Shown here piece by piece: positions 13,573-44,081 of a stretch of DNA of 64,000 bases. The DNA lies in NCBI GenBank assembly GCA_039096225.1, contig JBBPEB010000007.1:992001-1056000 (forward strand). The letters run 5' to 3'. Both the position numbers and the translations under genes were made by a program. The stretch is from Blastocystis sp. Blastoise. Lineage: Eukaryota; Protista; Bigyra: Opalinata. The notes under the pieces are model-generated. The model was not told the DNA's origin and did no database searches. It was given only the letters and a program-made list of their open reading frames with translations. Every line of letters starts with the position of its first letter. The first letter of the stretch is position 1.

Positions 13573-16500
13573 TTACTGTTGATCAACGACAATACTTAAT
13601 TTACCAATAGAATAACTATTATCGAAACGATCTGTAATTTCATTGGTCTTTCGAATATGTTGTGTGTGTTTTGTAGCAAATAATTTAACAGGAGGTAAGT
13701 TTAATATATATTCTGTTTGAGATAATAATTGAATATATACATAAGCATTAAGATTACGTTTTTGAAGATATTCACTTGTATATTTATCTTCTACATTAAT
13801 AACTTTCCCTGTAACTTCCATATTATTACTACTTATACTATAAGGAGTAATATTCTTATATAAACTCTTATTGGTTATATCATCATTTCGACAATTCTCA
13901 ACTAATGTCGATAAACGAGCAATATCTTTATCTGTCTTTTGCATAATCCAAGTATATAATTGTTTTTCATCATCTTCTCCATAAACACGAATCTTATAAA
14001 TATATATACATCCATCTTCTCTCTTTAAATACTTTCCTTTCACAGTATGATGATAAGAAAGAGTTAATCGTTCAATACACATATATTTTATAGTAAATAA
14101 TTGTATAGAAGGAAGTTCACTATAAGTAAGTAATTTATCACGGGGAATTGGATCATCTATATATATATATATATAACAAGGAAATAAAAAAAAATACATT
14201 TAATATAATTTTATAATATAATATAATATAAACAAAAAAATAACAAAAAACAAAAAACAAAAAACAAATATAAATCAATCAAAAAATAAATAAATATACC
14301 TATATCATAAAGTTCAGATAGATGTTCATTAATAAAAGGAGCCAATTCTTCTTTACTGCGAATAGGTATAGAAACAATAATATCACTAATAACCTTTGCA
14401 CAAGCTACAGTAGGACAAACTACATAGACATTTTCTTTGGATTTATTAATAATAATTTCATTATAGAATGTATCTACAGATATATTAAGATTAATAGGAA
14501 TACTCCAAATAACATCACCATTTAATTTTACATAATAAACATTCAAATCGGTTATAATTAAATAATTACAGAAATAATTACAATTTATATAACAAATAAA
14601 TTTATCTTTTTTCTTTTCTTGGAATATACCTCCTCGAATCATATCACTAAATATTAATTGACCAACACTACTAAAACTATCATATATTCTTAAAATATCA
14701 TCTTGATAAATAAAACGAGGAACACGTTCACGTTCTAAACTAATCTCTTCATTGGTTAAAGTCTTAACGGTATCCAATATATTTGTAGCTTCATCAGCTA
14801 AACCAGCTAATGGTTTTGCTACAAGTCCTACTACACCTGTACCAACACCTTTAAAGAATCCAAGAGCACCTTGTTCTTTAGCACCATGTACTGGATCTAA
14901 TACAAAACCAACAGCAGCTTCTTTCAATCCATAAACAAATCCTTTCTTACCTTCAGCTCTTCCTTCATTAAATTCTTTATCACCACTAATAGAAGCCATA
15001 AAATTACCTATAGTACCTGTCATCTTACTAGCACTATTAAATACACCATAAGTAGTAGAAGAAAGAAGTTTCTTTGTACCACGACCAACACCTTTAGCAA
15101 ATTCACCTGGTCCTTTAACTATACCTTGAGCAGGTTCATAGAAGAATGCTTTGACACCACTACCTACATTATCAATTAGACTAAATGGACTACCTATAAT
15201 ATCAACAGAAGCAACGATCTTATAAACATTACGCATTATTTGAGATATATAATGAGACATAATCTTAGCAATAAATTCATCTTGAGATTGTAAAATATCC
15301 GTGAAAAAGAGAGCATTCATAGAGATCTTAGCTTCATCTAGATTTCCAAGAGCAGTAGATACAGTATCGATAACAAGAGAAAGTGGTAAGAACATAGGAT
15401 CATTAGGAAGGAATGAAGAAGAAAGAGGATGAGAAGGATCCATTTTATTTGTAAGAACTAATTGTATAGGTTGTAATTCTAATGTTTCTATAAATATTTT
15501 ACTATCAGAAGCCATTTCATCAGGAAGAATAATTGGTCTAAAGAAATAAAAAATAATAATGATATGTATAATTTTAAATATTTATTGTAAAATAAAATTA
15601 GTTTAAAATGTATATATATATATATATTAAATAAGAATAATAAATATAATAATAAAGATATATATATATACCTAACAAATAGAGGATTTAATCCAATAAC
15701 TTCAGTTCCCTTCTTACGTTCAGTTTCATATAAAGTGGAAGGAATGCTACTTAATAAGGAGAGGAGAGATACTAATATATAACTATCACTATACACACGA
15801 ATCTCCTATATAGATAATTCAATAGTAATATATTAAGATATAATAATAATAATAATATACTAAGGTTATTTAAATATAGAATAAATAATATATATATATA
15901 TATATACTTGTAGAAGTAGAGAGAGATATTCTATATAAAGAACTGATGGATGTGAAGGCATAATAAGAGATAAAGAGAAGAAACTATTATCTGTATTATT
16001 AATAGAAGGAGAACCAACAAATACATTCTTATCTACAGTGAGTAATTGATTATCTATTTGGAATTTACCAAGCTATATAATGGTAAGTATTATAAGTATA
16101 ATAATAATAATAATAAACCATATAAATATAATAAACACATAAATATAATAAATAAAATAATAAATATAATATATACCTTCATTTCTACCGTTTGTGTTTT
16201 ATTAACAAGTGAATCATAAGTAATATCAAAGTTCTTACAACATATATAAAGTAATTCCTTAGGAGTACTATCAATAAGACTAATACCAAATCCTTCCATA
16301 CTAACAGTAACATTAATATTACATATATCTTTTTCACTAGGAGGAGCAACCCAGAAAGTATCTAAATTCAAATAAGTACCAAAACCAGAAATAGACTTCT
16401 TTATATTATAAACCATATCTTCTTTAATAATATCAATAGTAGTAGAATAAAAACATTTATTTAAGTCTTTTATATCTATATCTTGACCTTCAGGAGCTTC

Positions 16501-19500
16501 TGCTTTTGTTGTTTCTTTATATACACCCCATACTTGTATTTCACATTTATTCATATCTTGTGTCTTTCCCCACGGGAATGTGAACTGTTCACCAATATGC
16601 ATAGAAAATGTTGTTACTTCTATAAAATAGTAATTGTTTATATAGTAATAATTATATATTAAGATAAAATATAACGAAGAAAAGAAATAAAAATTAAAAA
16701 AAAATAATAAAAATAAATATAAAATAAGAATAAAAAAATAATAATAATAATAATATAAAAAAAAATAAAAATAAAAATAAGAATAAAAAAAAAATAATAA
16801 TAATAATAATATAAAAATAAAAATAAAAATAAACCCCTCTATATATATACTTTGAGAGACCTTCGCGAATTCAATAGAAATTGGTCTTTCTGAATAATTA
16901 TTAAAGTTATCTAATCCATCTTGATCGATTAATTTCATACCATTCACTCTTCTTAAATATAAACCAGGATGAATCTTATAATAATCAGCAGCACTACCAC
17001 CATAAACTTCTTTTACTTGTAATTTATCTCGTTCACCAACCATACATGTAAAACCTAAATCATCTTCTTCAAAATCAACTATAAATCCATTATTCTTTTC
17101 TTCCTTTTCTATTTCTCTACATACTTTAGAAGTTAAAGTACAATCACCAATAGTTGCAGTAATATAAAGAGAATCACAATCAGCAGGTATTTGGGGTAAT
17201 TGATTAATACTATTAATAATAATACTATATCCTTTATTCTTTTCTAATTCTTCAACAGCCTTTAAAGCTTTTACACTTGGATTAAAACTATTAAAAGCAG
17301 ATTTCGTTTGTCCACTCTTCTTCATAAGATCACGTGCAGTATCAATATCAACTTCAGGACTGTCTGCTATATAATCAAATGTATTCTTAGCAACATTCAA
17401 AACATCTTCTTTAGTACTATTACGATCTTCAATAGAATTAATTAAAGCATCAGTAATAGAAGGATATCGAATCTTAGCACGATTTGAATGATCAACATAT
17501 TTATTAATATATTGAGCTGTCTTATTTTCTTTATCTCCTTCTATAGAAGAAGCAGCTTCACTTGTATTCTTTATATAATTTTCTATTTCAGTATTCATAC
17601 ATACTATATATTCACCTACTTCTTGTACTATATCTTGATTGTCTACCATACGAACAGTCTCAGCAATAAGATTATTTGTACCTGTCATAAAATTAACATA
17701 TACATAACCACCAAATTTATAATCATTTTCGGGATCATAGCAAGGAACACGGAAACGATATAAAGTATTATCTTCTAAATCTTTTAAGTTAATTGTACCT
17801 ATGTAACCAGTATATGGACTTAAAACATCATAACGAACACATAAACGGAATTCTAATATATCAGGCTTTGATTTAGTTAAGAAGATTTCTTTATTATAAT
17901 AAGCTAAAATACCATTATAAGTATCAGTGGCTGCTTTCTTTTCATCTCCTTCCATTTCTACATAACTAGTTATAGAAGTCTTATTATTAATCTTTAAATC
18001 ACTTGCATATCTATATTTTATATATAAGTATTGTTTTCCTTCATGATTATCTTTTATTTCTTGTACTCGACGAGTTATATTAGCATATAATGTTTGAAGA
18101 TCTTTATAAGTCTGTACATATTTAGCTAAATATTCATTATAACTATTTAATATATATGACTTTATATATTCTTGATTCTTATTTTGTAAAGTAATATAAT
18201 CATCTTCAAAGATTAATAACTATAAAGTTATAGTATTATTAATAATAATAAACATAATAATAATATATATATATAACAAATATATAACAAATATATAGCA
18301 AATACAATAAATATAATAATAATAAAATCAAGTATATACCTTAGAAGCTTTATCAATATCCATATAAATATTAACTTTCTTATTCTTATATCTCTTTAAA
18401 GAAATAGTTTGTTTCGATATAATTTCTTCAATATTCATCTTCTTTACATATTTATATCGTTCTACACTTTCAGGATCACCAACTTTCTTCATATAAATAA
18501 ATATATAATTAGATCCTTGAGGATCCACTTTAATATATTTCGTAGAAGTAGCAGGAGAGAGACAAAGAGAAGTAGAAAGAGGAGCACCTTCTTGTTGTAT
18601 ATATATATTAAGATCTAATGTACTATTTGATATACAATAAGGAATCTCAGATAAGGACTATGAAAATGAAATTATAGTCATATATATTCATATATACATG
18701 AAAAATTAATATAATAAAATAAAATAATATAATATAATAAAATAATATAATATAAAATAATAAAATAATAAAATAATAAAATAATAAAATAATATAATAT
18801 AATAAAATAATAAAATAAATATTATATAAATATATATATATACAAGGGGTCTAAAAACAACACAGATATAGCCTAAGTTTTGTTTAATAATAACTTTAAA
18901 ACGTTTATCATTATAACGGCAATCTTCTTTTTCTTGATGTTTATCGATATTAATTTCTAATTCTCTATCTGTATTACTAACATCTATCTTCTTATCTAAT
19001 ACTATACAATATTCACCAATTGTATTTAAATCAATTTCACTACTATATACATAAGAATCGGTATTATCAGTAGAACTATCAATATTCATGCATAAATGAT
19101 TAGCATAAGCACAGGAAGGGGGATTATAAACAGAAATAGTATTACTCACTAAGGAGAATGCAGGTAAAGAAGGATGTTGACGAAGCTATATATAGAGGAT
19201 AAGATAGTATACAATAAGTTATTATATATAATAGAATAGATAATTATATATAATAGAATAGATAATTATATATAATAGAATAAAATATCTATATATATAT
19301 ATATATACAAGTATATTATATTTGGTTTCATTCTTGACTATATATTGATTTGTAATAGTAACAAGGAAGGAATAAATAAATTGATCAGGAGCACGTGCTA
19401 TAGATACATTATATATATATTGAGAACCATTCTCTCCTTCTACCTATATATAGAGTAATATATATAATAGAAAATATATATAGATTAATAATGTATATAT

Positions 19501-19572
19501 AGATATATATACTTTAACTTGATTATCTACACCAAGAGTATCAATTGAAAAAGCATCACTCATTTTACTATC

Positions 19573-19603
<31 letters not shown>

Positions 19604-19873
19604 TAATAAATAATATATAATTTATAAAATTATATATAATATATAATAATATAGAATGAATAATATATACCTCTCATATAAAGTTGTACTTTATTCTTCT
19701 TATTAGCAGGATCAATGAATCCAAATAATCGCGGGAATATATAGTTTTCATCTTTACAATTCATATACTTAGGTACATCTGGTATTTCGCTACTTGTAAA
19801 TATACGTGTTTCTGATTCAGGTAAGTGAACAGTTGTTTTATCCGAAGAATATATACTAAAAGATGATAATAAT

Positions 19874-19928
<55 letters not shown>

Positions 19929-22900
19929 TATATATATATATCAAATTGTAATAAAACTCAATAATTAATAGTAAAATAATAATAAACATAATAATAATAA
20001 ACATAATAATAATAATATATATACGAGAGAGGGTGTTCAGTTCTGTTAACGATAAGGAATTGAGGGTATATACTAATACAATAACAGCCGGTATCGTCCT
20101 TCTTAATATCATAAGATAAATATATAGTACCAGTAATCTCTGATGAATAAGAGAAACATTTCTTACTTACTTCCAGCTATATAGATAGATGTAATGTATT
20201 AATAAATGAATATATATAATATATATTATATAGAATAATATAGAATAATATAGAATAATATAGAATAATATAGAATAATATAGAATAATATAGAATAATA
20301 TAGAATAATATATACAGGAATATAAGCTAATGTATCTTTTTCTCCATATATAGTAATAAATATTTTCTTTTCAAATATATCAACACTATTAACATATTGT
20401 TCTGCACCCATTTCAATTGTATTTGTTGTCTTATTCACATCTATATATATATATATTTTAATAATAAATAATAATTATATATATAATAACTATATATATA
20501 TATATACATTTTTCTTCCATTTCCTTATATTCATAGATGCTATAGTTAATAGGAACAGGACAACAATTACTTATCTTCATAATATCACTGAAAACGCACG
20601 TGTATAGAGTTAATGACGACTTCTCCGTCACTACTTCTGAAGTAGTAACTTCTGACTATATATATACATAATGAGAAATAAGAATTCTATAATAATATAT
20701 ATATAATATATAATATATATATATACGAAAATATAATAAGGTTTATTGATATCATAAAGATTGAAACATCTATTGATATTATTATTATATATATTACAAA
20801 GTAATATATCTCTTCTTTCCTTACTATTCTCATGCTGCATAACTTCAAGACTACCTATATATATATATAATAAATATAAACATAATAAATATAAATAAAT
20901 ATAAATATAAAAAAAAAAAAAATAAATATAATAAACATAAAATAAATATAATAAACATATCATAAATATAATAAACATAAAATAAATATAAACATATCAT
21001 AAATATAAATATAATAATAACACAATATGTATATACCATTTTCAATATAAGTGACAGGAATAAAACATGATTCATCTCGTTTTATAATACATAATTCTTG
21101 TTTACATGTATCAATATTACGTTTATCTTCAATTAAATTCAAATATAGAGGATCTTTGCATTTATTATGAATACATAAATTACTCTCTATCTTTACGATT
21201 TTTTGTCCATTTTTAGAGTCTACGTGAGTAATAATATTTCCCACTACTTGAGCATTCTTATATAGGGTAGTACATTGTTGAACTTCTATATCTACATTAA
21301 TATAGATTTCATCAAAATCACCTATTTTCACACTAATAATACGATTATTTACATATTTATCTTCCATATTATAAGCACGTAAAGGAAGAGAAGGATGAGC
21401 AGGTAAAATAGTAGTAACAGTTTCTCCTTCTTCAACTAATGTATACCCAGGTTTTAATAAATAAGGGACTTTTGTAGAAGTACCATCCGTATTATTATTA
21501 CTATTAGCATCTTTAGGTGTATTTACAGTAGGTAAAGAAACAGCAAAACTAACATGACGACCTTCTTTTTTAACCGCGGGAGTATTTGTATTAGTAGTAG
21601 TAGTAGTAGTAGTAGTAGTAGCATTATTATTATCAGTATTATTACTAATATTATTAGTATCAGAGAGAGTAGAAATTTGTGATTTCTTCATATATAACGG
21701 TTTATGAGCATGAATCTGTCGATCTAACGTATCAAATGCAATCATCCAATCTTCACGTGACTCAAGATCTCGTGCACGTGCAACTAACTTTGTGTTTTGT
21801 ACTTGTATAACGAATGTATTAGGCATACATTTATTAGGAGGAGGAAGGAGATTGACTTGATCTGAAAGTATCTGAATATCTTGAGTATAAGGAGATGGAT
21901 TCATATCATCACAAGAAACAGGATTTGTAGGTATATAAGAATATAAACGGAAATAAGGAGAATCCTTATAAAGTTCTATATAACAAGGATGAAACTTCTG
22001 ATCTATAGACTATATATATAATAAGATAGAATACTATAATAAACAAATATATATATATATAAACATAAATAAATTAAAAAAAATACTTTAATATCAAAGC
22101 AATCAATAATTCCCGTGAATATCGGTTGTTCATACATAGTTGATTTATAGATAAAATCTTCTTTTTCTTTTATATATTGATATATATTACCGTCTTGTAC
22201 TACTTTATATTGTAAAGGTAATCCATAGTTATTATATATAGAGATATAATATCCTTTCATTTGACTATTACTGCGTGTTGATTTATCTTCTAAACTCTGA
22301 GATAATAAGAGTAATTGAGTTAAGAAAGCAATAGAGATATTAATATTCATAATAACATCACTATGAATGGCTATAGTAGTATAAGAAAGAGAAGAAGGAG
22401 ATAAAGAGGAAGAACTATCACGAATCTTAGCTAAACGTTGTTTCTATATGGAAATATACGTTTATATTTTAAATATATAATTATTTTGTATTTATTATAT
22501 ATATAAAATAATGAATTAAGATAAAATATCAATTATATAATTGTAATAGTAAATATTACAAAAGATATAATATAATCATATAACAATATATATATTAATA
22601 ATAGAACAATAATAATAGTATAGAATAATAAAATCTATATAATAATAACATCTATATACAATAATATGTTTAGGTAATTGTGTATAGCTAATAAACATAT
22701 GCCAAGGTTCAAAGAGAGGTTCCCATTCACACAATGTCTTATTATAATATTCTGCATAAATAGCAACAACCATATTAATATAAGTATCTTCAGGAGACAT
22801 ACGAACTGTTAATTCTATATCTGTTAAATCAAATTCTATTACAGGAAGAGATAAATCATTAGCATCATTAACTACAGTAAACTTTACATTATGAATATCT

Positions 22901-24158
22901 ACATTAAAATTAATTGTAGTTGTAGAAATAGTTTCTATATCATTTTGAGCTTCAGTTACTTTCTCTTCAATATCATCTAAATCTTTCAAATCTTTGATTT
23001 TCTTATCAATTTTCTTTACAGGAGTTGCATCTTCTTTTGAAGGGAATAATGTATTTAAGAAAGACATAAATAAATTCATATCTAAAATACCAAATCTTAA
23101 ATACACAATATTACTCATTTTATAATTACCCTTAATAGAAGCAAAATGATCATTCAATTCAACATCAATATACATATCAAAGGGTTGAATACTATCATAT
23201 ACAGTAGGAGGAGGAATAATAAGTGTGTCATTTGTACGGCAACCACGAATATTCTTAACAGCAAGATCTACAAGACAATCATCATTAGGGAATAAATGTA
23301 CTTTTAATGAAGTATCTAAAGTAAATAAATAAACAGAAGCATCAGCAATATGTGGATCCTCAACAATATATATAGATGGCTTTTCAACAAAGAAACTGAA
23401 ATATACATCCATATTCATAGCTATACAGATATAATCAATAAGTTATATTATAAATATATTATAAATATATATAATATATATATATATATTATATATATAT
23501 TATATATATGTTATATGTTATATATATATATATATTTATATACAAGTAGGTTTTTTAGGTCCTTCAAGAGCTTCTTTCTTTTTAGTTTCTTCTTCTTTTT
23601 TCTTTGTTTCTTCTTCTTCCTTCTTTTTCTCTTCTTCTGTTTTTTCAGGTCCTGCTAAAGCTCTAGTTTTCCAATCTAATAAGTCCCAAATTAAAGTTGT
23701 AGGTAATATTCTCATACTACCCATTCTTAAGGATATATGCATATACATAACATCATCATGTTTATTCTTAGAAGTAACATAATTAGGACATATTACATTA
23801 TAATCAGATACTTTTCGATTCTTCATTTCCATTAATAATGTCATACAAGGACGATTCAAATCTCCGAATTTCATTGGCTTCTTATAACTTGGAAGAACTT
23901 GATTGGTTTGACGACTATCTGCTATTTCTATATATGATAAAGTTAAACCAATATCACGTTTCTCTGAATCTTGATGGAAATGAACATTCATCTCACCAAT
24001 ATCTAATATACTTAAGGAATCCTATATATTATTTATATTATTATTTATATTATTTGTATTCGTAGTAATATATATCATAATAATAATTAACTTATTTATA
24101 TATATATCTAATTTATAAATAAATGTAAAAAAAATAGTTAATATTTAAAAAATCAAAG

Positions 24159-24192
<34 letters not shown>

Positions 24193-27100
24193 TTGATGCT
24201 TTCCCATCTGTTCATATATTTCAATTCCTTTCATATGTTCATCATAGCCTCCATAATTATTGGATAGTTCTATACATATACCATCTAAACAGAAATCTAA
24301 ATTAATAATAGAAGCTACACCTGGAGCAGTTGGTGTTTCTTCCTCTTCATCTTCATCATCATCTTCATCATCATCTTCATCATCATTAGATTCAACATTT
24401 GTTCCATTCTTCTTTTTATTCTTATTCTTATCTTTATTACTCTCTTCTTCTTCTTCTTCTTCTTTTTCTTCTTCATCTCCTTCTATTACAACATCTAAAT
24501 TATCATCAACAATTTTACTAATACCACGACTAGCTCTTAAAGCAATTTCATTATCTAATACTATAGGACTAGTATTCATAAAATCATCATTTACCTCTTC
24601 TATAGATAATTCTTCTTCTTTTTCTCCCATATTTTCGCTTAATATAGCTAAAATCATCTGAACTTGTTTTTCACTAACAGCAAAAGCAATCTTAGTAATC
24701 TTTATAGCTACATCACATTGTATATCAACACGAACAACTAAAAGCATCTCTACACCACCCATAAGAGCTTGATAAATATAATCATATTCAGGAGAAGATT
24801 TAGGAGTTAAACGATCATCTGTATCTTTTAATCCTTTTGGAACAGCAAGAGCAGATACTAATTTCATACCTTGGAAATGAATAGATATTGTATTTAAAGG
24901 TATTAAATGATCTTTAACAATACGAGCAATATTAGTAGTACGAGGAGTAATAGCAGAAGTAATTGGATCTATATAAGTAGTATCTTCTTCTATCCATTCA
25001 TTATCACTATCAATAGCATCTTCAAATTCATCATCACTCTCAAATGAATCTACAGTCTCTTTAGTATTGGAATTCATAGTAGTAGCATTAGGATCAATAT
25101 AAGTAGAAGGAAGAGGAGGAGGCATATTATTAATAGCAATTGTACCCATTTCAAATCGTAATAATTCTTGACTATTTGAATTACGAGGAATAACAATCAT
25201 AACATTATTAAATAATATATCAATTAAAGGTATAGGTACACCTCCATTTGTCATTTCATCTTTTGAAGAAGTACTTTCATCAGGTAATATAGGGACAGTA
25301 AATCCATTACTATCAACATAAGTAGAAGGTTTGGGCTCTTCTTTAATAGGTTTTTCTTTCTTATTCATTTTCTTAGATTTCTTATTCTTCTTATTTGTAC
25401 TACTATTATCTTCTTCATCTTCATCTTCTTCATTAATTGCTTCTAAATTATTCATATTTGCTATTTGTACACCTTGAATAGAATTCATAGTAGAAGTAAC
25501 AGCAGGAACAGTAGGAGCAGGAGAAGACATAAGAGCAAGAGCATCTGCTAAAATACCTTCAGAATAATAAGCTAATAATTGATTGATATATATATATCTA
25601 AATGTTATTTCAGGAGATTCCATTAATACTTTAGCAGATATATCATATCCTATAGAATAGTCATTCATATATAAAAAAGATATAATAAAGAAATTAATAT
25701 TATTTTAATATAGTAAAAAGAAAATGTTGATTTGTTTGAATGTTAAAAATAATAATAAATAATAATATATAATAATATATAATAATATATAATAATATAT
25801 AATAATAAATAATAATATATAATAATATATAATAATATATAATAATAAATAATAATAAATAATAATATATAATAATATATAATAATAAATAATAATAATA
25901 AATAATAAATAATAAATAATAAATAATAATATATATACCAGGATATTGTGGATATTTCTTAGAATTATACATAATAACATCAAAAGTAAAGAAATCATTA
26001 TTCTTTTCATCTTTAATAACTCGAATAATATAAGGATAAAGACCTTGAGAAGGTGATTTATCTTGAATAGTAATATCACCCAATCCTCCCTTAACACACA
26101 TAGTGCCTGCAGACATATTAAACATTAAATTGAATTTATCCATAGATATTAATAATAATGGACTTGTTGTCTCCTAAAAATATAGTGTAATTAATATATA
26201 AACATATATATATTATTAGTAGATATATTCATTATTATGATGATTATATTTATTGATATATATAATAGTGATAAAAAAATATTTAATATATCCATAAATA
26301 AAAAAAATTAATATATATATACAGTATTAAGAACAAGATTGATTCTCCCAAGTTCAACATAAGCAAATATAGTCTTACGATTCCAATCCCCAAAGAATTC
26401 AGGTTCTTCTTTTGGTTTTTCATCTTTAGGTTTATTATAAGCTTCTTTAGCTTTAGCTATAAGTGAGTCTCTAGTCTTTTTAACATATCCTGATGCAGCA
26501 GAAGTAAGAGAAGAGATAGAAGAACGAGAAGCAGAAGAAGCAATTGATTCTTTATCACCTAAATCTTCATTCTTAAAGAAGAAGGAAAGAAGAGAATATA
26601 TAGTTGATGGATTCACAAATACTATATATATATAATAAAATTTAAAAAAAAGAAGAAGAAACAAAAGAAAAATGAATTAATAAATCAATATATATAATAA
26701 TAATAATAATAAATATAATAAAAATTATAATAAATATAAATATAAATAATATAATAATAATAATCAAAAAAAAAAAATAATAAATATATAATATATTAAA
26801 AAAACATATATATATATTTAAATAAAAAAATAGAATAAAGAACATACTACTCATAGCTCCAAATTTCACTTTTACGACCATATCCCCTTCAACATCATTA
26901 TATATAGGAGATAATTCTTGTACCATATATACATCTATAGTAACCATTTTATTCTCTGTAGTTTCCTTTAAATCACGAGTAGCAACTTCACAATGTTCAT
27001 CTATATCTTCAGATATATACATATATTGTTTCTTTCCATTATGAATTAATGTTTCACGATGACCATCATGTATATATATAGTATCTAAAGTCATTTTCAC

Positions 27101-34129: not shown

Positions 34130-35271
34130 TTGAGTATGCTATTTATATAGTTTTATCATTTATATATATATATACTATATTTCACTTCTCTATTGATATT
34201 CATTAATAAATATATATATATATATATTTTATATTACTCTTTGTTATTCAATTTCTATTGTTATCACAAGGATTCTTTTATATTTATAATAATTCTCTTT
34301 TGATGATTCATTATTCTATCTTCATTATTATCTCCTAAACTATTTCGTTGCGATTTCATTTTCAATTCTTTTTTTCCTTTCTTCCTGTATATTTTATTTT
34401 CATTTTTTCTTTACTTTTCTCGTAATATACTATTTCTTATACATCATTATCATTTGGTGTTTTCTGCTTTAGACTATATTTATTAATTTCTACAATATTT
34501 TATTTATGAATTTCAATATTTTATTTATTAATTTCTTCAATTACTCTATTCATAATAAGTGTAACAATATAATTATAAATTTTATAATAATATCTACTCT
34601 TTATTATATAACTTTGTAAATATATCATATTTAATATCAATGTAAATATATATATGATTGCTTATCATGTTTTTGTATTCATTATTAATATCATGATGTT
34701 TTTTTTTGTTGTGGATGAAAAGTCAAGACAGTATTCTTGTTTTCATATCACACGTTTTTTATTTTTTTTTCTAATTTCATGTTTCTTTCTTCATTTTTTA
34801 AAATACTGTTTCATTTCTTTATTGTTTTTCAATTTAGAGATTATATATATATATATAACAATTTTTATGTTGATTATGTTTTTCTAATATTAATCATTCT
34901 TTTTGTATTCTTTTGTTTTGTTTTTCACATTCTATATTCATGATATGTTCATGATATGTTCTTTATACATAATATTTGTATCACTTTGTTCAAGCTACTT
35001 TTTATTTCTTTATTTTCCCACTTATGAACAAAAATTATCATAAGATAACTTAGCACAATGATTCTTTATTCATAAAACCCTTAAAATATGAAAAATACAA
35101 TCAATTTACTATAATGAGCATATTATTATCATCGACTTAATATCTGTGTTGTCACTATCTTCATCTTTATTACATATAACATATAAGGATTATCATTATA
35201 TACAATTTAATATAAATAATCAGTAATAATTCCATAAATAACACTATGGACATTTTGTGTTTTTTTGACCC

Positions 35272-35771
35272 TATTTCCCGTAAGAGAAACAACAAAATGA
35301 CTGGGATTTTTTAATCAAAAATACGTTGGCCTAAACTCGAGAAAAGAGTGTCCGCCAACTTGTCAAGTTTCTCTCTTTTTGACGAGAAAAACTTAAAAAT
35401 AACTCTACAAAATATATTGTTTATTTATATAATCATAGACATTCTAAATATTGACTATTTTACAGTGTTTTATGATTTAAAATGACTGTTTAAAACCAAA
35501 AAGACTTTAATTTTTTCTCTGAAGTCTATAATTCAGGAATGGATTACATGAGTGACAAATTTTTTAAAGTTGTGTGTTCTCTGAGTGATGTATTATCATT
35601 TCAATCATTCTCGTCAAGTCCTTTTACAATAAAAACCATTATACAGCCTAAACCAAAACACACCTAAAAATTTCTTCTTTTTTATTTCCCAAGGAAAAAA
35701 CAATAAAATGACTTGACTTTTTTATTCATCATTTTTTAGCCTAAAGACGACAACATTTCTTTCAGCCAACT
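35272..35771 (+). repeat. Diverged ~90-bp direct repeat (35272-35360 and 35683-35771), left subterminal region
   Basis: Both copies read TATTTCCC..AAACAA(C/T)AAAATGACT..TTTTTTA..GCCTAAA..GCCAACT. Confidence 0.7.
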
Positions 35772-36352
35772 ACCCTAGAAAGTCAAAACAATTAAAAATT
35801 CAAAAAAGAAAAGTAAAACGGAAGCTCTTGTTTTTGTTTATTGATTATCGTCATTAAACCTGTTTTTAAAAATATGACTTTAGAATATCATTCAGGACTT
35901 GATTTATAGTTCAGGGTATCGTTTTAAGGTTTAAAATAGCTTTTTTGAGAGAATTCATAATTATGTCCTAAACCAAGAGGAGTTGTGTGTTTTTATCATC
36001 TCTGTTGTTAGATATGTGTATACACAACATACTCAGCTTCACATAATTGTTTTTCTTGCTAGTCAAGATTTTTCACTCATTTTTAAATATTTGATTTTTA
36101 GTCTCAAAAGTGGTATAGAGTCTCTATACATGCCTGTAAGAATCGTTTTTAATACTAAAAAGTCAAAAATATTAAAGAAAAGTGACAGTGAAAAAAGGAG
36201 GGAAAAAATACTTTTTTTGAGTTTCTTGATATTCCCGCAAAAATGATTTTTCTTTTAAGACCTGAATACACCCATACGCTATTGAGCCTATTAACTTAGA
36301 AAATATTTTCATTTGTTACTTATTTTCTTTATTTTTATTTTATTTTTATTAG

Positions 36353-36823
36353 CTGTTATTTTAAAAAATAGAAGTTGATTTTAACTTCAGATTATTCTCT
36401 TGTATGTATATTACTATTTTTTATTCTTTATCAATATTAACATTCTCCCATTCTCTAGCATGTATAGGTTCCTGCTCGTCCATGGTTATAAGAGTCCTCT
36501 TCAGTCCATGTCAACAACGTCTATGATGTCAAACTACTTTCAAAGTATATATGTATTTATTTATTTTTATAATTATCTCTAATTTTTTTCTTTGTTATAT
36601 TTTTAAGTATTATATAATAGAGTACTTATCGTATATTCATTCTATCTATTATTAGCTTTCTTTTTGTTTTTTCTTAAATTAGAATCTAATTATTTTATTA
36701 TTTATTTTCATTATTTTTATATTTTTATTTATTATTATTTATTTATTTAGGTTGTTTTCTACTGTTTCTGTTGGTTATCTTTCCCTATGACTCAACATCA
36801 CCAAATTTATTTTTTTCTATTAG
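36353..36823 (+). ncRNA. Putative spliced non-coding exons inside the element (36353-36401, 36468-36544, 36751-36823)
   Basis: Relatively GC-richer blocks bounded by TAG acceptors and GTATGT/GTATAT donors like host exons; the first block has stops in all three frames. Confidence 0.45.
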
Positions 36824-36859
36824 GTATGTTTATTTATTTATTTATTTATTTATTTATTA

Positions 36860-38875
36860 TCTAGTTCTTCTTTATTTCTTCTTCTTACACAAAATGATTC
36901 CTTCTTCTCTCTTCTTCATTTTCTTCCTTCTACACTTTTATCTCCTTATTTCTTCATCTTCTTTCTTTATTACTTCTTCCTATGCCTTGTCTCCAGCCTA
37001 TATCCTTGTCTCTCCCTTTGATTCATTATCTTCCTCAGATCTTCATTTTTCTTTTATTTTTTCTTCTATCTAAATTCCTTTATTTTTCTTTTTTTTAATT
37101 ATACCTCTCTCTTATCTTCGCTTCCCTTTTATATCACTCTTTCATTACTCTTTCTTAATCACTATTCTATTTACATTGTATTTCGTTATGTCTTTTTCTT
37201 TTATCCTGTTATCCTCTTCTCCTTATTCTATACTTCTTTTTCCTCGACATGTATTAGTGTATACCCTCCTTTTCTTCCTCTTCCTCTTCTTCTTCTTCTT
37301 CTTCTCCATATAATTCTTTGCTTTTTTCAGATCTTCATCTTCTTATTTATATTTATATCACTATTTATTATATATATAGTTCTCTTCTATTATTTGCCTT
37401 CCTCCTCTTCCTTCTTTCTATTCTTCTCATACTTCTTCTCTCCTCCTTCTGATTCCCTTTTTTTTACTGCCCTATTTTCCTTCTTTATCTTCCTTCTCTC
37501 CTCTTTCTGTATAATTCTATCTCAATCTTCCTTCTCTCCCTCTCTATTCTCGTATCCATCTTTATCCTTATTCTTTTTCCATTTATTTCTCTCTGTCCCT
37601 GTCTATTTTATCTTATATGTCTCTTTCTACCTTCTTGTTTCCTTTTATATTTCCTTCTATGTCTCCTTTTCCACTTTATATCTACTTTTTTTTCTCTCTC
37701 TCCTTCTCTCTATTATTATATATTCTTATGTTCTAGTTATCTATTTTCTATTTTTATTTCTATCCTTTCATTCTCTATATTGTTATATCTACTTCTATTT
37801 TGTCTCTTTTCTTCTATCTTAATCTTCTATTTAATCCTTTTATTTCTTTCTATATATCTATATCTTCTTGTCTCTAACTTCTTTCTTAATCTCTTTTATA
37901 TCCTTCTATTTCTCCTTCTATCTCTCCTTCTTTCTCCTTTTCTATTTTCTTCTAACCATCTTTTTTTCCTATTTTTCTCTTTCTATCCCTATTATCTCAT
38001 TCTCTATCTTCTTCTATATTCTTCTTCTTTCATCTTCTCTCCTTCTTCCTTCATCTTTCAATTTCCTTCTCTATCTTCCTTTTATCTCAGCTACTCCTTC
38101 TGTCTCAATCTTCAGTCTTTCCTTTTCTTTCTCTTTCAACATCATTCTATCTCTCTGTATTCCTATATTTCTCTTCATATTTCTCTATCCTTATCTATCT
38201 CATTCTACCTCATTTATGTGTCTCAATCTCATTCTCTATTTCCTTCTATTTTCTCTTATCTACTTATATCTTCGTATATTTCCTTATATCTACGTATATC
38301 TACTTCTCTATCTTATTATATCTCCTTCTAACTTAATTTACTTCCTCTTCTTCTTTTTCTCCTTCTATCTCCTCTTCTATCTCCTCTTTATTCTCCATCA
38401 TCTTCTATCTACTTCTCTATTTCCATCTACATCCTTCCATCTTACTACATCTCAATCCGTTTTCTCTCCTTCTATATCCTTTTATATCCTTTTATCTCTC
38501 TTTCTCTCTTATCCTATTTATTTTTCTTATTTCTATCCATTTCTATCTACTTTATCTTCTCTATCTCATTCTATTGTATCTATATCATTCTCTTATCTTT
38601 CTATCTCCTTCTATTTTTAATCTTTTCTATCTACTTCTCCTTCTCTATTTCCTTCTATTCACTTCTATATACATCTCATTCTTCAAATCATTCTATATTC
38701 TTCCCTTCTTCCTTTTAACTCTTGCTATTTGTTTTTATTTTAATCTACTTCTCTCTTCCCTCAATCGACTTTTATCTACTTCTCCTTCTCTGTTTGATTC
38801 TATCTCCTCTCTATCCATATTTTCCTTTTTATTAATATTTATCTCCTTCTCTATATCTTTCGGTATTCTTCTATC

Positions 38876-38948
<73 letters not shown>

Positions 38949-40690
38949 ATATCTATCTATTTATTTATCTCAATCCCCTCTCCCCTTCTATATATTTTAT
39001 TACCTTCTATGTCTCTACCCTATTTCCCGTTTTCTTTCTGTCTCTTTCTTCTCTCATATACTATTGTTCTATCTTTTCTTTTTTTATTCTTCTTTTTTTC
39101 TTCTTTGTTTTTTCTATTATACTTCTTTATCTTGCTTTGTCTCTCCTTCTCTCTATGTCATTCAAATTATAATTCTCTCTATCATTCCCTATCGTTTTCT
39201 TTGTATGTATTTTTCTTTCTAATTTTTTTCTATATAAATTTATCTTTCTTGATATTCACTTCCTGCTCCTTTTTTCTCCCTTCTTCGTCTCATCTTCTTT
39301 TCTTCGTCTTCCAATTCTATCTGTTTTCCTCCTCCTTCTCTATCCTTCTCAATTCCTCTCTACCTATCTTTATATTCTTTCTTTTTTATACACCTTCCCT
39401 ACTCCTCTATTTCTCTTTTTATCTTTATTCTTGTATCTATTTTTATCTTATTCTCTATTTCATTTGATTTCTTTTGTATATCTCTCATTCTATATAGAAT
39501 TCTATCTCTTTCTATCTAATTTCTTCTTTATGTCTCTCTTTTCTTCTTTCTTTCTATTCATCTATTAGTGTATCTATCTATTTATATCTTTGTATTTTTT
39601 TTCTCTCTATCTATCTATCTATCTATCTATCTCTTTTATTTCTTTATATCTTTCTGTTTCTCTATATATGTTTCTTGTTTATTCTTCTTTTCTTTTCTTT
39701 CTCTTCTTCTTCATTTTCTTGTATATCTTCTTCCTATTCTTTATCTTACTTTTCTTTCTTTTTTTCACCTCCTTCCTTGTCTCTTCTTCACATTCATCCT
39801 CTTGTTCTCTTATTAATCTATTTATTCTTTCTTATCATTATTCTATTTATTCTTCATCTTCTTGTTGTCATTATTCATTTCCTTCTTCTTATTCTTCCTT
39901 ATCTTCCTTATCTTCTTATTCTTCTTCCTATTCTTCTTCTTCTTCCTTATCTTCTTCCTATTCTTCTTTTCTTCTTCTTCCTTATCTTCTTCTTATTCTT
40001 CCTTATCTTCCTTATCTTCTTATTCTTCTTCCTATTCTTCTTCTTCTTCCTTATCTTCTTCCTATTCTTCTTTTCTTTTTCTTCTTCCTATTCTTCTTTT
40101 CTTCTTCTTCCTTATCTTCTTCTTCTTCTTCCTTATCTTCCTTATCTTCTTATTCTTCTTATTCTTCCTTATCTTCTTATTCTTCTTCCTATTCTTCTTC
40201 TTCTTCCTTATCTTCTTCCTATTCTTCTTTTCTTCTTCTTCCTTATCTTCCTTATCTTCTTCCTATTCTTCTTTTCTTCTTCTTATTCTTCCTTATCTTC
40301 TTCTTATTCTTCCTTATCTTCCTTATCTTCTTCCTTATCTTCTTCTTATTCTTCCTTATCTTCCTTATCTTCTTCCTTATCTTCCTTATCTTCTTCTTAT
40401 TCTTTATCCTCTAATCCTCTTCTCTTCTGCATTCCTTATTATTATAGATCTCTATATATCTATCTTTGTCATTTATTATAAATTATTTTTCATTTTTTTT
40501 ATTAATCTCAATAATTAAAGACCCTATCTCATTTACTTTATATTTCTTTCTCTTTTATTCTTTTTTACTTCTTTTCCCTTCTTCTAGCATCCTTTTTCAC
40601 TTATACATATATAAATATATCCTTACACATCATACTGACTCATTATTCCTACTATTTTACTTTCATTTATGTATTTTTATTCTATATTAT
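36860..40690 (+). repeat. ~3.8-kb polypyrimidine (G-depleted) low-complexity tract including (TCTA)n at ~38870-38945 and a TCT/TCC/TTA/TAT triplet mosaic at ~39880-40400
   Basis: Read directly: extreme strand asymmetry; plus-strand ORFs here consist almost only of F/L/S/Y/I. Confidence 0.9.
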
Positions 40691-40759
40691 CCTTAAGCTT
40701 ATATTGGTAAGTATCTATCAGTTTATGATAGAAAACAGGTTCAATTCCTGTCTTAAGGT
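40691..40759 (+). tRNA. Degenerate tRNA-like sequence (probable pseudo-tRNA; nominal anticodon TTT, identity uncertain)
   Basis: Acceptor stem CCTTAAG/CTTAAGG; D-like arm CTTA-TATTGG-TAAG; anticodon stem CTATC/GATAG; canonical T arm ACAGG-TTCAATT-CCTGT. Lacks U33 and the 8-9 linker. Confidence 0.55.
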
Positions 40760-42599
40760 CAATTACATAACTAATTCTTTATATATAGGTATCAATAATT
40801 ATATTATATTAATTTTTTCAAAAATTATCTATTCAAATAGATGAAGATAAATTAGATCAATTACTATTTTTTCTTTACATATGTATTTATTTCATCATTG
40901 AATGCATTGATAATATATAGATCAATCAAAAATAGCATTCAAAATAATCTTTTTAACAAAAAGAGACACAATAACATTCAATTACTTCTTAAGTGTATTA
41001 TAAAACAAAATAATCTTCTCAAAAGATTATTCAAGTCGTTTTATAATGAGTATATGTGAAAAATTAGTTTAGTTCAAAATAATAATTCTCATTTTTCAAA
41101 ATTATATTATCAAATGATTCTGCGTAATTTTTTTTTCATATAACCACTATACCCTTTTACACAAGAAAATAATCATTTAAATACATTTTTAAGTTGATAA
41201 ACAATAAATTAAGAATTTATTCTTGTTAAAAAACAAAATTCTTAGAAAATATTACTAGAATCATACAAATAATCAATGCAACTATTCAATTATACACCTT
41301 TAACGTGATTTAAGACAAGTCATAAAAATGGAGATTCTCAATATTTTATATTTTTTAACTAATTGATATTTTAATAACTTTTAAACTTCATTTAAACACT
41401 AAATATGTAATATAATATGTTTTTGTCATTTTCGAAATTAGAATATGTATTTCAAATAATTTTAGTTTTACTAAAAATCACTTAAAATGAATACACAGAG
41501 TTTGTAGACAATAAATAAATTATGAATAAAACTATATATCGATATAAGACTTTTTTTGACAAAAAAGTGATTTTTGCATTTGTTTTATAATAAACTATCA
41601 ACACGACTCCGACTATTCAACTAAAAATATATAAAATATGATTTTTGTTTGTTTATACGTATATTTGATAATAGTAAGTCCTTGAATACTAGAAAAAGTT
41701 CTTGCTGAGTAATTATAAAATACTATTTTGATTTGTTTTTGATATTATTTAAATGAAAAACACTATTTGCATGAAAAAATGCTTACTCTATGTATTTCAA
41801 GTCTATTTAAAGGTATTAGAAGACTTTAACTTGATTCCAATTATTGCTTTAATTCACTTTTAAAATGTTTTTACCACTCTCTTTGTCATATTATGATAAC
41901 AGATTAATAAAAAATCGGGACAAATACATTAAAAAGATAATATTTCATAACATTTTTCGACTCTAGACCTTTTTATCTTCATTTTCTTTATTTTATAATT
42001 TTATTGAAGATATGTGATAAAACTGATTCTTTAAATAATGATTCAGGCAATCATTCTGGATTATATAAATGACTTTTATTCTGGAAATAGAAGTTTCAGA
42101 GTCTTCTCTATAAGTCTGTATTGTAACCTATATTTATTTTTTAAAAGACTTATACTTACTGAGTGATACTAAAAATAATTTTGACAATTAAGGATAAAAA
42201 TCACTCTTCCATAGTCAAAACTGATTATAAAATGATATAATGATAAATAACTATATAATTCTTTAAAATAAAACAATTTTTGTATTACTTATGATAATTA
42301 TGATAAATTGAAAATAACAATAACAATATCCATTTTCCTCATAGAAATAAAATTTTTCTTTCTCTTTTATTCTTAACCATTCATTTTTCTTATGATGAAG
42401 ATTCTCTATATTTAGTAGATATGAGATTATTCATGTTTATTTTCATTATTTCAGCTATATCTTCTAAATTCCTATTACACCCTTTTATAACAAAACAAAA
42501 TGCTACATGACTTATCACATATTTATTTTATTATATCTTATATGATTAATATGATATATTATTAAATTTTATTTTTATTTTATTATATATGATACTATT

Positions 42600-43400
42600 A
42601 TGATGGTAGGTGTTTGCTGTTTCTTTATATTTTATTTTTTCTACTCTATTCATTCATTTTTCTATTGTAGCTGTCTCTGCTTGGTGTTTTGACACTTGCT
42701 GGTCTCCTTAAACGTTCTGGTCCTTCTTGTGTGTGGTCGTGGCTCTCTTATAGATGGGTTCTTTAGGTCTAGAATGGAAGGAATCAATGTTAAAAGAAGG
42801 TATATATCATCTATATTATCTATTACATATTATATAACTAACCCCACTTTATATTTATATAGCATTAATGTATATATTTATATTTTATTATTCTATATTA
42901 ATTTACTTTATTATATATTATTATATTATATAACTTACTCTATCTTTATATAGGTTTCCAGGGGTTCCGTTGCTGTCGTTGTTGTTAATTGGAGAGAATG
43001 GTTTATAAAAAGTATATATATATATTTAATTATATTGTTTTATTCATTATACTATTTATCATATATCTTTTATAGGATGGTTCTTTGTCTTTGATTCCTT
43101 GCCTGTCTTGTAATGATTAGAAAAGGTATATATTTTTTATTTTATTATTATTTTAAAATGTTATATATATATTATTATTAGTAATACTTAACTAATATCA
43201 TCTCTTTATATAGGTTGCTTAGGCTTAAATGCAAATTAAAGACTGAAACTGTCCTGGTTGAAATATTATAAATTAAATATTATATATATTTTATTATATT
43301 ATTTATTATATGTTTTATTATCTTTTTTTTATATATTTATTATTATTGTTTTCTATTATTTGTTTTTATGATTATTTGATAATATTTAATTTGTTTGTTT
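42600..43400 (+). ncRNA. Putative multi-exon lncRNA or microprotein transcript (exons 42671-42799, possible 42863-42869, 42954-43011, 43076-43125, 43214-~43270)
   Basis: GC-richer blocks separated by AT-only spacers with host-type GTATAT donors and TATAG acceptors; only ORFs of about 33-42 aa after joining; GT-rich tract at 43391-43404. Confidence 0.6.
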
Positions 43401-43560
43401 TGTTATATCGTTTATTATTACACCACAAAAAGAATAAAAAAACCAATAAATGAAAAAATAGAGAATATTTAAAACCATTTTTATTCGCCAATTATTGTTT
43501 TAAGGTGCGTCATACTTTTGCACTGCTTTTCGATTTTATAAAATCACTGAAACTCTGACA

Positions 43561-43773
43561 AAAAATTTCACTGCTCACCACTGGGGAAACCAAAGCAAAA
43601 AAGTCGTTGGACCTTTTGTCAGCTACCCTTTAAAATTTTTTCACTGCTCCACCACTGGGGAAACCAAACAGAAAAATCAAATAACCTTTTGTCAGCTACA
43701 TATTTAAAAATTTTCACTGCTCACCACTGGGGAAACCAAAACAAAAAAGTCGTTGGACCTTTTGACAGAAACC
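43561..43773 (+). repeat. Three tandem 73-bp subterminal repeats adjacent to right TIR
   Basis: TCACTGCTC(C)ACCACTGGGGAAACCAAA...CCTTTTG(T/A)CAG starting at 43568, 43641 and 43714. Confidence 0.95.
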
Positions 43774-44081
43774 TGAAAAAATGTCCATAGTGTAAACCTT
43801 TAAAACCACATTTTAACTACGAATATTTCTATATAAAATAATTTATATCCCTTTTTATTAATGTTGGTTAAGATATATTATAAAAAAAGAATGATAATCT
43901 CATAAATAGATAAAAACACAATAGAATTAGGTTGTTAGTAAAATAACCACAAATATTGGAGCTCAATGACAAATGCCTTGGTCATCCAATCAAATAGCAG
44001 AGTCTTTCTGATTTCTTTATTGGCTAAAAGAATGTCTCAAAATTACACATAGAATAATTTTATTGTTGTTCCTGAACTAGA

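Follow-up and report, generated by a model that had tools for sequence, protein, structure and literature searches.

An 8.55-kb CACTA-type transposon copy in Blastocystis sp. 'Blastoise' and a transposase gene that may move its family

The element and its ends

The window analyzed here is a stretch of 64,000 nt (C29:992001-1056000) from the genome of the tortoise-gut Blastocystis sp. 'Blastoise', the assembly of which comprises 33.3 Mb in 34 contigs. Between a galactosyltransferase gene and a galactokinase gene, the window contains an element of 8.55 kb (35242-43792) that we interpret, with a probability of about 0.85, as a young non-autonomous copy of a CACTA (En/Spm, CMC-clade) DNA transposon, most likely moved in trans by the transposase WA158_005897. 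The element begins with the terminal inverted repeat CACTATGGACATTTT on the plus strand (35242-35256), and its right terminal inverted repeat on the minus strand (43778-43792) is the exact reverse complement of the left one. The repeat is a perfect 15 bp, base 16 being unpaired between the two ends, and carries the CACTA...TAGTG termini that characterize CACTA/En-Spm elements. The same three letters, TAA, stand on both sides of the element as its target-site duplication (35239-35241 and 43793-43795), whereas the 5-bp flanks are unequal (AATAA vs. TAAAC).

Subterminal repeats, a further character of CACTA elements, are present at the right end as three tandem 73-bp units on the plus strand (43560-43782; direct-repeat family D11), each of which contains CACCACTGGGGAAACCAAA. 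This motif occurs 110 times in the genome, three times per copy of the element at about 52, 124, and 198 bp from the right end, and the array is kept in every copy. The left end contained only two imperfect direct repeats of about 47 nt on the plus strand (about 35271-35317 and 35683-35729), as read from the sequence, and no 8-10-mers common to the left and right subterminal regions were found.

Copies, target sites, and age of the family

A genomic search with the 15-mer of the end, allowing at most one mismatch, gave 33 forward and 33 reverse matches, compared with 0 and 3 for the reversed control pattern, which excludes chance as an explanation of the ends. These matches form 31 pairs, nearly all of which are 8.4-8.8 kb apart, and 30 of the pairs delimit copies without a transposase. 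The left-end 29-mer has 31 occurrences in the genome, and the right-end 35-mer has 31 exact matches genome-wide. A first-pass annotation of the window had proposed a multi-copy element of the CACTA/En-Spm type with intact ends, and this proposal is borne out by the perfect repeats, the TAA flanks, and the many paired termini with consistent short duplications.

Twenty copies were fetched with their flanks for the comparison of duplications and identity. All 20 lie in different flanks, and every one has a short target-site duplication of the kind expected for En/Spm (3 bp) or for the wider clade (2-5 bp), with none longer than 3 bp. The duplication is 3 bp in 13 copies, including TAA three times, ATT twice, and TTC, ATA, TCA, GAT, TTA, TCT, TGC, and TAT once each. 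In the seven remaining copies the 3-bp register fails and a 2-bp register matches in each case; since this 7/7 fit is unlike chance, the stagger really does vary between 3 and 2 bp. The 3-bp duplication stated in the first-pass annotation therefore holds for the window copy and for most, but not all, of its relatives. One of the seven, on contig C8, starts with T instead of C, and has either a 2-bp duplication or a 3-bp duplication with the first base lost. A PIF/Harbinger element was rejected, as the TWA rule (TAA/TTA) fails: TAA or TTA was duplicated in only 4 of the 20 copies. Furthermore, a nested copy on contig C13 sits in the right end repeat of another copy (CACTAT|copy|TATGGACATTTT). 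This insertion is precise from end to end and duplicates exactly TAT, and it serves as an internal empty-site test because about sixty other ends show what the target looked like before it was interrupted.

The fetched copies fall into three groups, namely subfamily A (8.55-8.59 kb), to which the window copy belongs, subfamily B (8.83 kb), and a single 4.4-kb copy (L047) without roughly 37160-41130. Identity within the subfamilies is 99.5-100% for A and about 100% for B, with 14 variable substitution columns in eight A copies and nine in eight B copies, the remainder being 1-bp differences in homopolymer length. The two subfamilies are 92% identical to each other overall, and this identity is a mosaic along the element. 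They are identical over 35242-35540, 36730-39550 (apart from microsatellite indels), and 43032-43792, whereas identity is about 94% at 35540-36730 and only about 80% at 39600-42930. This pattern points to exchange between the subfamilies, by recombination or by template switching during the repair of excision gaps, a mechanism that we infer from the mosaic.

The family is very young and recently inserted. The first-pass annotation had attributed the intact ends to recent insertion or to selection; the near-identical copies speak for the former, and selection is not needed because there are only about 10 substitutions per subfamily among the copies. Older copies without exact ends were recognized by internal markers on contigs C7, C11, C20, C24, C25, C33, and C34; a marker from the pyrimidine-rich tract of the interior was found at 36 genomic places, as was one from the tRNA-like cloverleaf downstream of it. 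With the end-less copies included, the family accounts for about 0.9% of the genomic DNA. When the genome was searched with the DNA of the whole element, all of the best 19 of 667 candidates that were scored were full copies. An assembly artefact or a segmental duplication was rejected because the copies, which lie on long contigs, each have separate flanks and a duplication of their own. An element of centromeres, or one present once per chromosome, was likewise rejected, as some contigs hold two or three copies and others none.

Two B-type copies are enlarged by insertions. Internal markers identified the 22-kb pair at C24:351410-373427 as a B copy whose left arm is interrupted by an insertion of about 13.2 kb, and C33:73420-88519 is a B-type copy with an insertion of about 9.7 kb. 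Both insertions are presumably other nested mobile elements.

The transposase-bearing element and the source of mobility

The 31st end pair (C23:362896-378401) is 15.5 kb long and encloses a gene for a 917-aa transposase, which looks intact as judged from its reading frame. The right end of this element matches the 35-mer exactly (35/35) at 362896, with at least the right 215 bp being shared, and the three subterminal motifs lie at offsets of 52, 124, and 197 from that end, as in the transposase-less copies. The left end matches the 29-mer at 378401 with two mismatches (27/29). Pfam Transposase_21 was matched at four places in the genome, one of which (C23:375036-375410) lies within this end pair, and had no match in 14 control genomes. 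The gene corresponds to the NCBI hypothetical protein WA158_005897 and is single-copy in the genome; its four exons are separated by GTAT..TAG introns, and it is read inward from a start that lies 1.95 kb away from the left end. A paralogue, WA158_004695, is 53% identical and is present in three copies. The first-pass annotation had looked to a Transposase_21/TnpD gene between the same inverted repeats, and such a gene is what the 15.5-kb element carries: Transposase_21 is followed by a weak DUF4218 match, which is the typical order of En/Spm TnpD.

In an exhaustive phmmer search (1.84 billion representatives), WA158_005897 matched first its paralogues in the same genome and then plant En/Spm transposases from Asparagus, Rutidosis, and Prunus (E 6e-7 to 1e-4). 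An alignment with three plant enzymes showed D263-G264, D353, C372-x2-C375, D497-x2-H500, H671-x3-H675, and E695-R696 to be invariant. EnSpm, Mirage, Chapaev, and Transib transposases have a DDE triad together with C(2)C and H(3-4)H motifs, and the termini of this clade are CA..TG with duplications of 2-5 bp (PMC12730594). Residues D263, D353, E695, C372/C375, and H671/H675 of WA158_005897 fit this set of motifs (PMC12730594).

According to the proposed mechanism, WA158_005897 would recognize the 15-bp inverted repeats and the right subterminal array that both elements have in common, excise the non-autonomous copy, and insert it again at a cut staggered by 3 bp or, at times, by 2 bp. Insertion of the window copy by such a cut would have produced the TAA duplication, and parts of the interior would have passed between subfamilies A and B by recombination or by template switching in gap repair.

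The relation between the two kinds of element is confined to their termini as far as they were compared. The part of the 15.5-kb element that was read covers 3.4 kb, from 1.5 to 4.9 kb from its left end, and showed no nucleotide or translated similarity to the A, B, or short copies. Four markers of 28-29 nt were taken from the window copy (left exon-like block, tract, 3' half of the cloverleaf, and right exon-like block); each was found at 25-38 genomic places, and none was found in C23:362896-378401 at up to three mismatches. The 15.5-kb element thus does not represent an A or B copy that contains a nested insert. A deletion derivative of the dSpm type was also rejected, as neither the 3.4 kb nor the markers indicated that the 8.5-kb interior is a subset of the longer element. 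There may be diverged homology between the family and the first 1.5 kb of the 15.5-kb element, given that the left end is 7% diverged.

Several points weigh against mobilization of the family by WA158_005897 as a CACTA system. The Transposase_21 score of this protein is 27.7-31.9 bits, at the family cut-off of 28.6, while the matched plant proteins score 243-310 bits. A 2-bp duplication in 7 of 20 copies departs from textbook En/Spm behavior. The interior of the copies has no detectable similarity to the autonomous element, as judged from the four markers and from the 3.4 kb of its 15.5 kb that was read. We infer both the role of WA158_005897 as the mover of the family and the continued activity of the latter.

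It is also conceivable, though unlikely, that the family is a non-autonomous CACTA lineage moved by another transposase, either WA158_004695 or another of the many Transposase_21/DUF4218-like proteins of the genome, which would make the 15.5-kb element either a dead relative or a coincidental one. The genome contains at least seven further clusters of related transposases, and the candidate on contig C23 is single-copy with a left end that is off at 2 of 29 bases. However, no other transposase-bearing place adjoins a match to the 15-bp end at up to one mismatch, whereas the C23 candidate combines the exact right end and the whole subterminal array with an apparently intact frame and the catalytic residues.

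The transposase-like clusters, at least seven of which were found in addition to the gene itself, encode Transposase_21/DUF4218-like proteins that are about 25% identical to WA158_005897. Many of them lie on one 532-kb contig (locus tags WA158_0069xx), and the clusters represent a lineage-specific radiation of En/Spm-like transposases. In the 15.5-kb element, a second spliced open reading frame (ORF) runs from C23:376663 toward the left end (L054:3128-3271, plus strand; start MSSIYDDVSSSEDE), upstream of and divergent from the transposase gene. Its product could be a TnpA-like partner; Pfam gave no match for exon 1, which is the part of it that was read. A B copy at C23:353998-362833 adjoins the 15.5-kb element at a distance of 62 bp, and the right ends of the two are at 353998 and 362896.

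The interior and comparison with known systems

The interior is best read as passenger, non-coding DNA. In the window copy no ORF longer than 100 aa was found outside the low-complexity tract, in agreement with the first-pass annotation, which had described the element as lacking a transposase. The left arm (35257-36459, plus strand) is non-coding, with no ORF above 87 aa; its A and B versions are identical to about 35540 and then about 94% identical. It is followed on the plus strand by two exon-like blocks, L1 (36460-36546), with the borders TAG| and |GTATAT, and L2 (36755-36828), with the borders TAG| and |GTATGT. L1 is conserved relative to its surroundings, having one difference between A and B in its bin of about 100 bp vs. 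13 in each of the flanking 100-bp bins, and all three frames of L2 are short. At the other end, the right arm (42669-43229, plus strand) contains further exon-like blocks at 42669-42808, 42955-43012, 43077-43126, and from 43215, which are separated by AT-rich GTATAT..TATAG stretches. No Pfam match was obtained for any of the exon-like blocks, which were searched exon by exon. The B copies and one A copy (L050) have at 42753/42754 a 39-bp intron-like segment (GTATAT..TATAG) that the other A copies lack. The difference may represent either a precise, intron-like loss or slippage, and slippage would be sufficient because there are TTATAG direct repeats at the borders of the segment. An AT-rich stretch at 43246-43323 is homologous to 526-583 of the 4.4-kb copy L047.

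Between L2 and the cloverleaf lies a pyrimidine-rich, G-depleted tract of about 3.7 kb (36829-40585, plus strand), which contains (TCTA)n runs, TTC/CTT-type repeats with a period of 9-12 nt, and the repeat families D1-D10. Pyrimidines account for 83% of 36860-40450 (composition T 57%, C 27%, A 14%, and G 2.4%), and the GC skew of the tract is -0.7 to -0.9. The name "polypyrimidine tract" in the first-pass annotation is thus right as to composition and loose as to structure, as no stretch of at least 60 nt in 36860-40450 consists of pyrimidines alone. Downstream of the cloverleaf, an AT-rich spacer (40759-42668) without any ORF of note is the part that diverges most between the subfamilies, at about 80% identity.

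It is very unlikely that the element is autonomous in some unrecognized way, with its spliced exons or the frames in the tract encoding a novel mobilizing protein. The tract does contain open frames of 183-297 aa on its plus strand, and the exon-like blocks have plausible GT..AG borders that resemble the real introns of the transposase gene. However, open frames are expected by chance in the tract because stop codons can scarcely arise where G makes up 2.4% of the strand, and their products are of low complexity, being rich in Leu, Ser, and Phe. The exon-like blocks, besides being without Pfam matches, differ in the right arm between A, B, and the 4.4-kb copy by substitutions and indels that interrupt every frame, although A and B are both amplifying subfamilies. 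The spliced RNA unit proposed in the first-pass annotation was thus seen only as exon-like blocks with GT..AG borders and no reading frame common to the subfamilies.

The cloverleaf itself is a 68-nt tRNA-like structure (40691-40758, plus strand) with a 7-bp closing stem and three hairpins. Read on the plus strand, it shows GGTTCAATTCC, which resembles a T-loop, and TTGGTA, which resembles a D-loop. The minimum free energy of the A version is -19.9 kcal/mol (z -4.3), with 0 of 200 shuffles being as stable, and the B version has a z of -4.8; the opposite strand folds about as stably. One compensatory pair distinguishes the A and B versions in the middle stem (T-A vs. A-T), and the closing stem and T arm are unchanged. 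The tRNA-like piece reported in the first-pass annotation is therefore real as a stable fold and is not upheld as a tRNA: ARAGORN detected no tRNA in the window, and Rfam gave no match on 35242-43229 at E values up to 1. A tRNA gene or a tRNA-derived element was accordingly rejected for 40691-40758, despite the cloverleaf fold. Diverged 3' halves of the cloverleaf also occur outside the family at C16:809333-809360 and C28:205359-205386, with three changes each; in these versions the T-loop is TTCAAAC in place of TTCAATT, and the stems are kept.

Long non-coding RNAs may carry tRNA-like modules at their 3' ends, as in the mascRNA of MALAT1. The cloverleaf of the Blastoise element resembles mascRNA in having T-loop-like and D-loop-like motifs and in lying directly downstream of a long low-complexity tract. 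In contrast to mascRNA, it has no two-base linker ahead of its D arm and does not score as a tRNA. It is improbable, but conceivable, that the interior is a mobile module of non-coding RNA, in which a long G-depleted transcript would end or be processed at the cloverleaf and the structured unit would be under selection. On that reading, in which the pairing kept through the compensatory change between A and B and the diverged versions at C16 and C28 would find a place, the transposon would spread this unit, possibly one common to several transposon superfamilies of the genome.

The whole system is most similar to maize En/Spm and its non-autonomous partners dSpm/I. Like the Blastoise elements, these begin with CACTA and end with TAGTG, duplicate mostly 3 bp, and have arrays of subterminal repeats; a DDE transposase of the TnpD type, bearing C(2)C and H(3)H motifs, is accompanied by dependants that lack one. 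Unlike in maize, the end repeat in Blastoise is 15 bp with a sequence of its own, 35% of the insertions have a 2-bp duplication, the two subterminal regions have no motif in common, and no TnpA-like second protein was identified, exon 1 of the one candidate having no Pfam match. Unlike dSpm, the non-autonomous copies share only their termini with the autonomous element and are not internal-deletion derivatives of it. The transposase is 17-18% identical to the plant En/Spm enzymes, and its host is a stramenopile gut protist.

Plant CACTA elements with cargo, such as Tgm-Express of soybean and Tpn1 of morning glory, capture gene fragments. The Blastoise copies are similar to these in being large and transposase-less, with an exon/intron-like interior that is unrelated to the transposase; they differ in consisting mostly of a low-complexity tract and an AT-rich spacer, and no donor gene was identified among the best 19 of the 667 candidates scored in the whole-element search.

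The CA..TG termini, the 2-5-bp duplications, and the C(2)C and H(3-4)H motifs are also found in Mirage, Chapaev, and Transib (PMC12730594); unlike these, the best matches of the Blastoise transposase outside its own genome are plant En/Spm proteins with Transposase_21 and DUF4218. A Transib-type element moved by a RAG1-like transposase, which the first-pass annotation had already dismissed, is extremely unlikely: the first seven bases (CACTATG) fit the Transib or recombination-signal heptamer pattern and Transib belongs to the same wider clade with CA..TG termini (PMC12730594), but the duplications are 2-3 bp in all 20 copies and never the 5 bp of Transib, the enzyme between the same ends is of the Transposase_21/DUF4218 kind and aligns with plant En/Spm proteins, and the genome gave no match to the RAG1 core (PF12940), which is a weak point since the control also matched nowhere.

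Read as a CACTA copy, the element belongs to a transposon family that is new and apparently active and is of a well-known kind; no such elements had been described in detail from this organism before. A text search of the literature for CACTA together with Blastocystis yielded no relevant paper, and the genome paper of this isolate gives only bulk percentages of transposon content (PMC12129017). A very divergent lineage of En/Spm-type transposases is hereby documented in a stramenopile, and a single family yields both 2- and 3-bp duplications as well as chimeric subfamilies that point to template switching. Comprising a transposase gene that looks intact, precisely defined ends, and some 30 nearly identical passengers of 8.5-8.8 kb, the family is a defined transposon system that looks currently active. 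Blastocystis is the commonest eukaryote of the human gut, and few genetic tools are available for it; the system could be used as a strain-typing marker or as the basis from which to develop insertional mutagenesis.

Elsewhere in the window, several long ORFs on the minus strand (14211-25668) matched the middle and C-terminal domains of VPS13. They appear to be parts of a single large, split gene for VPS13 that lies upstream of the element.

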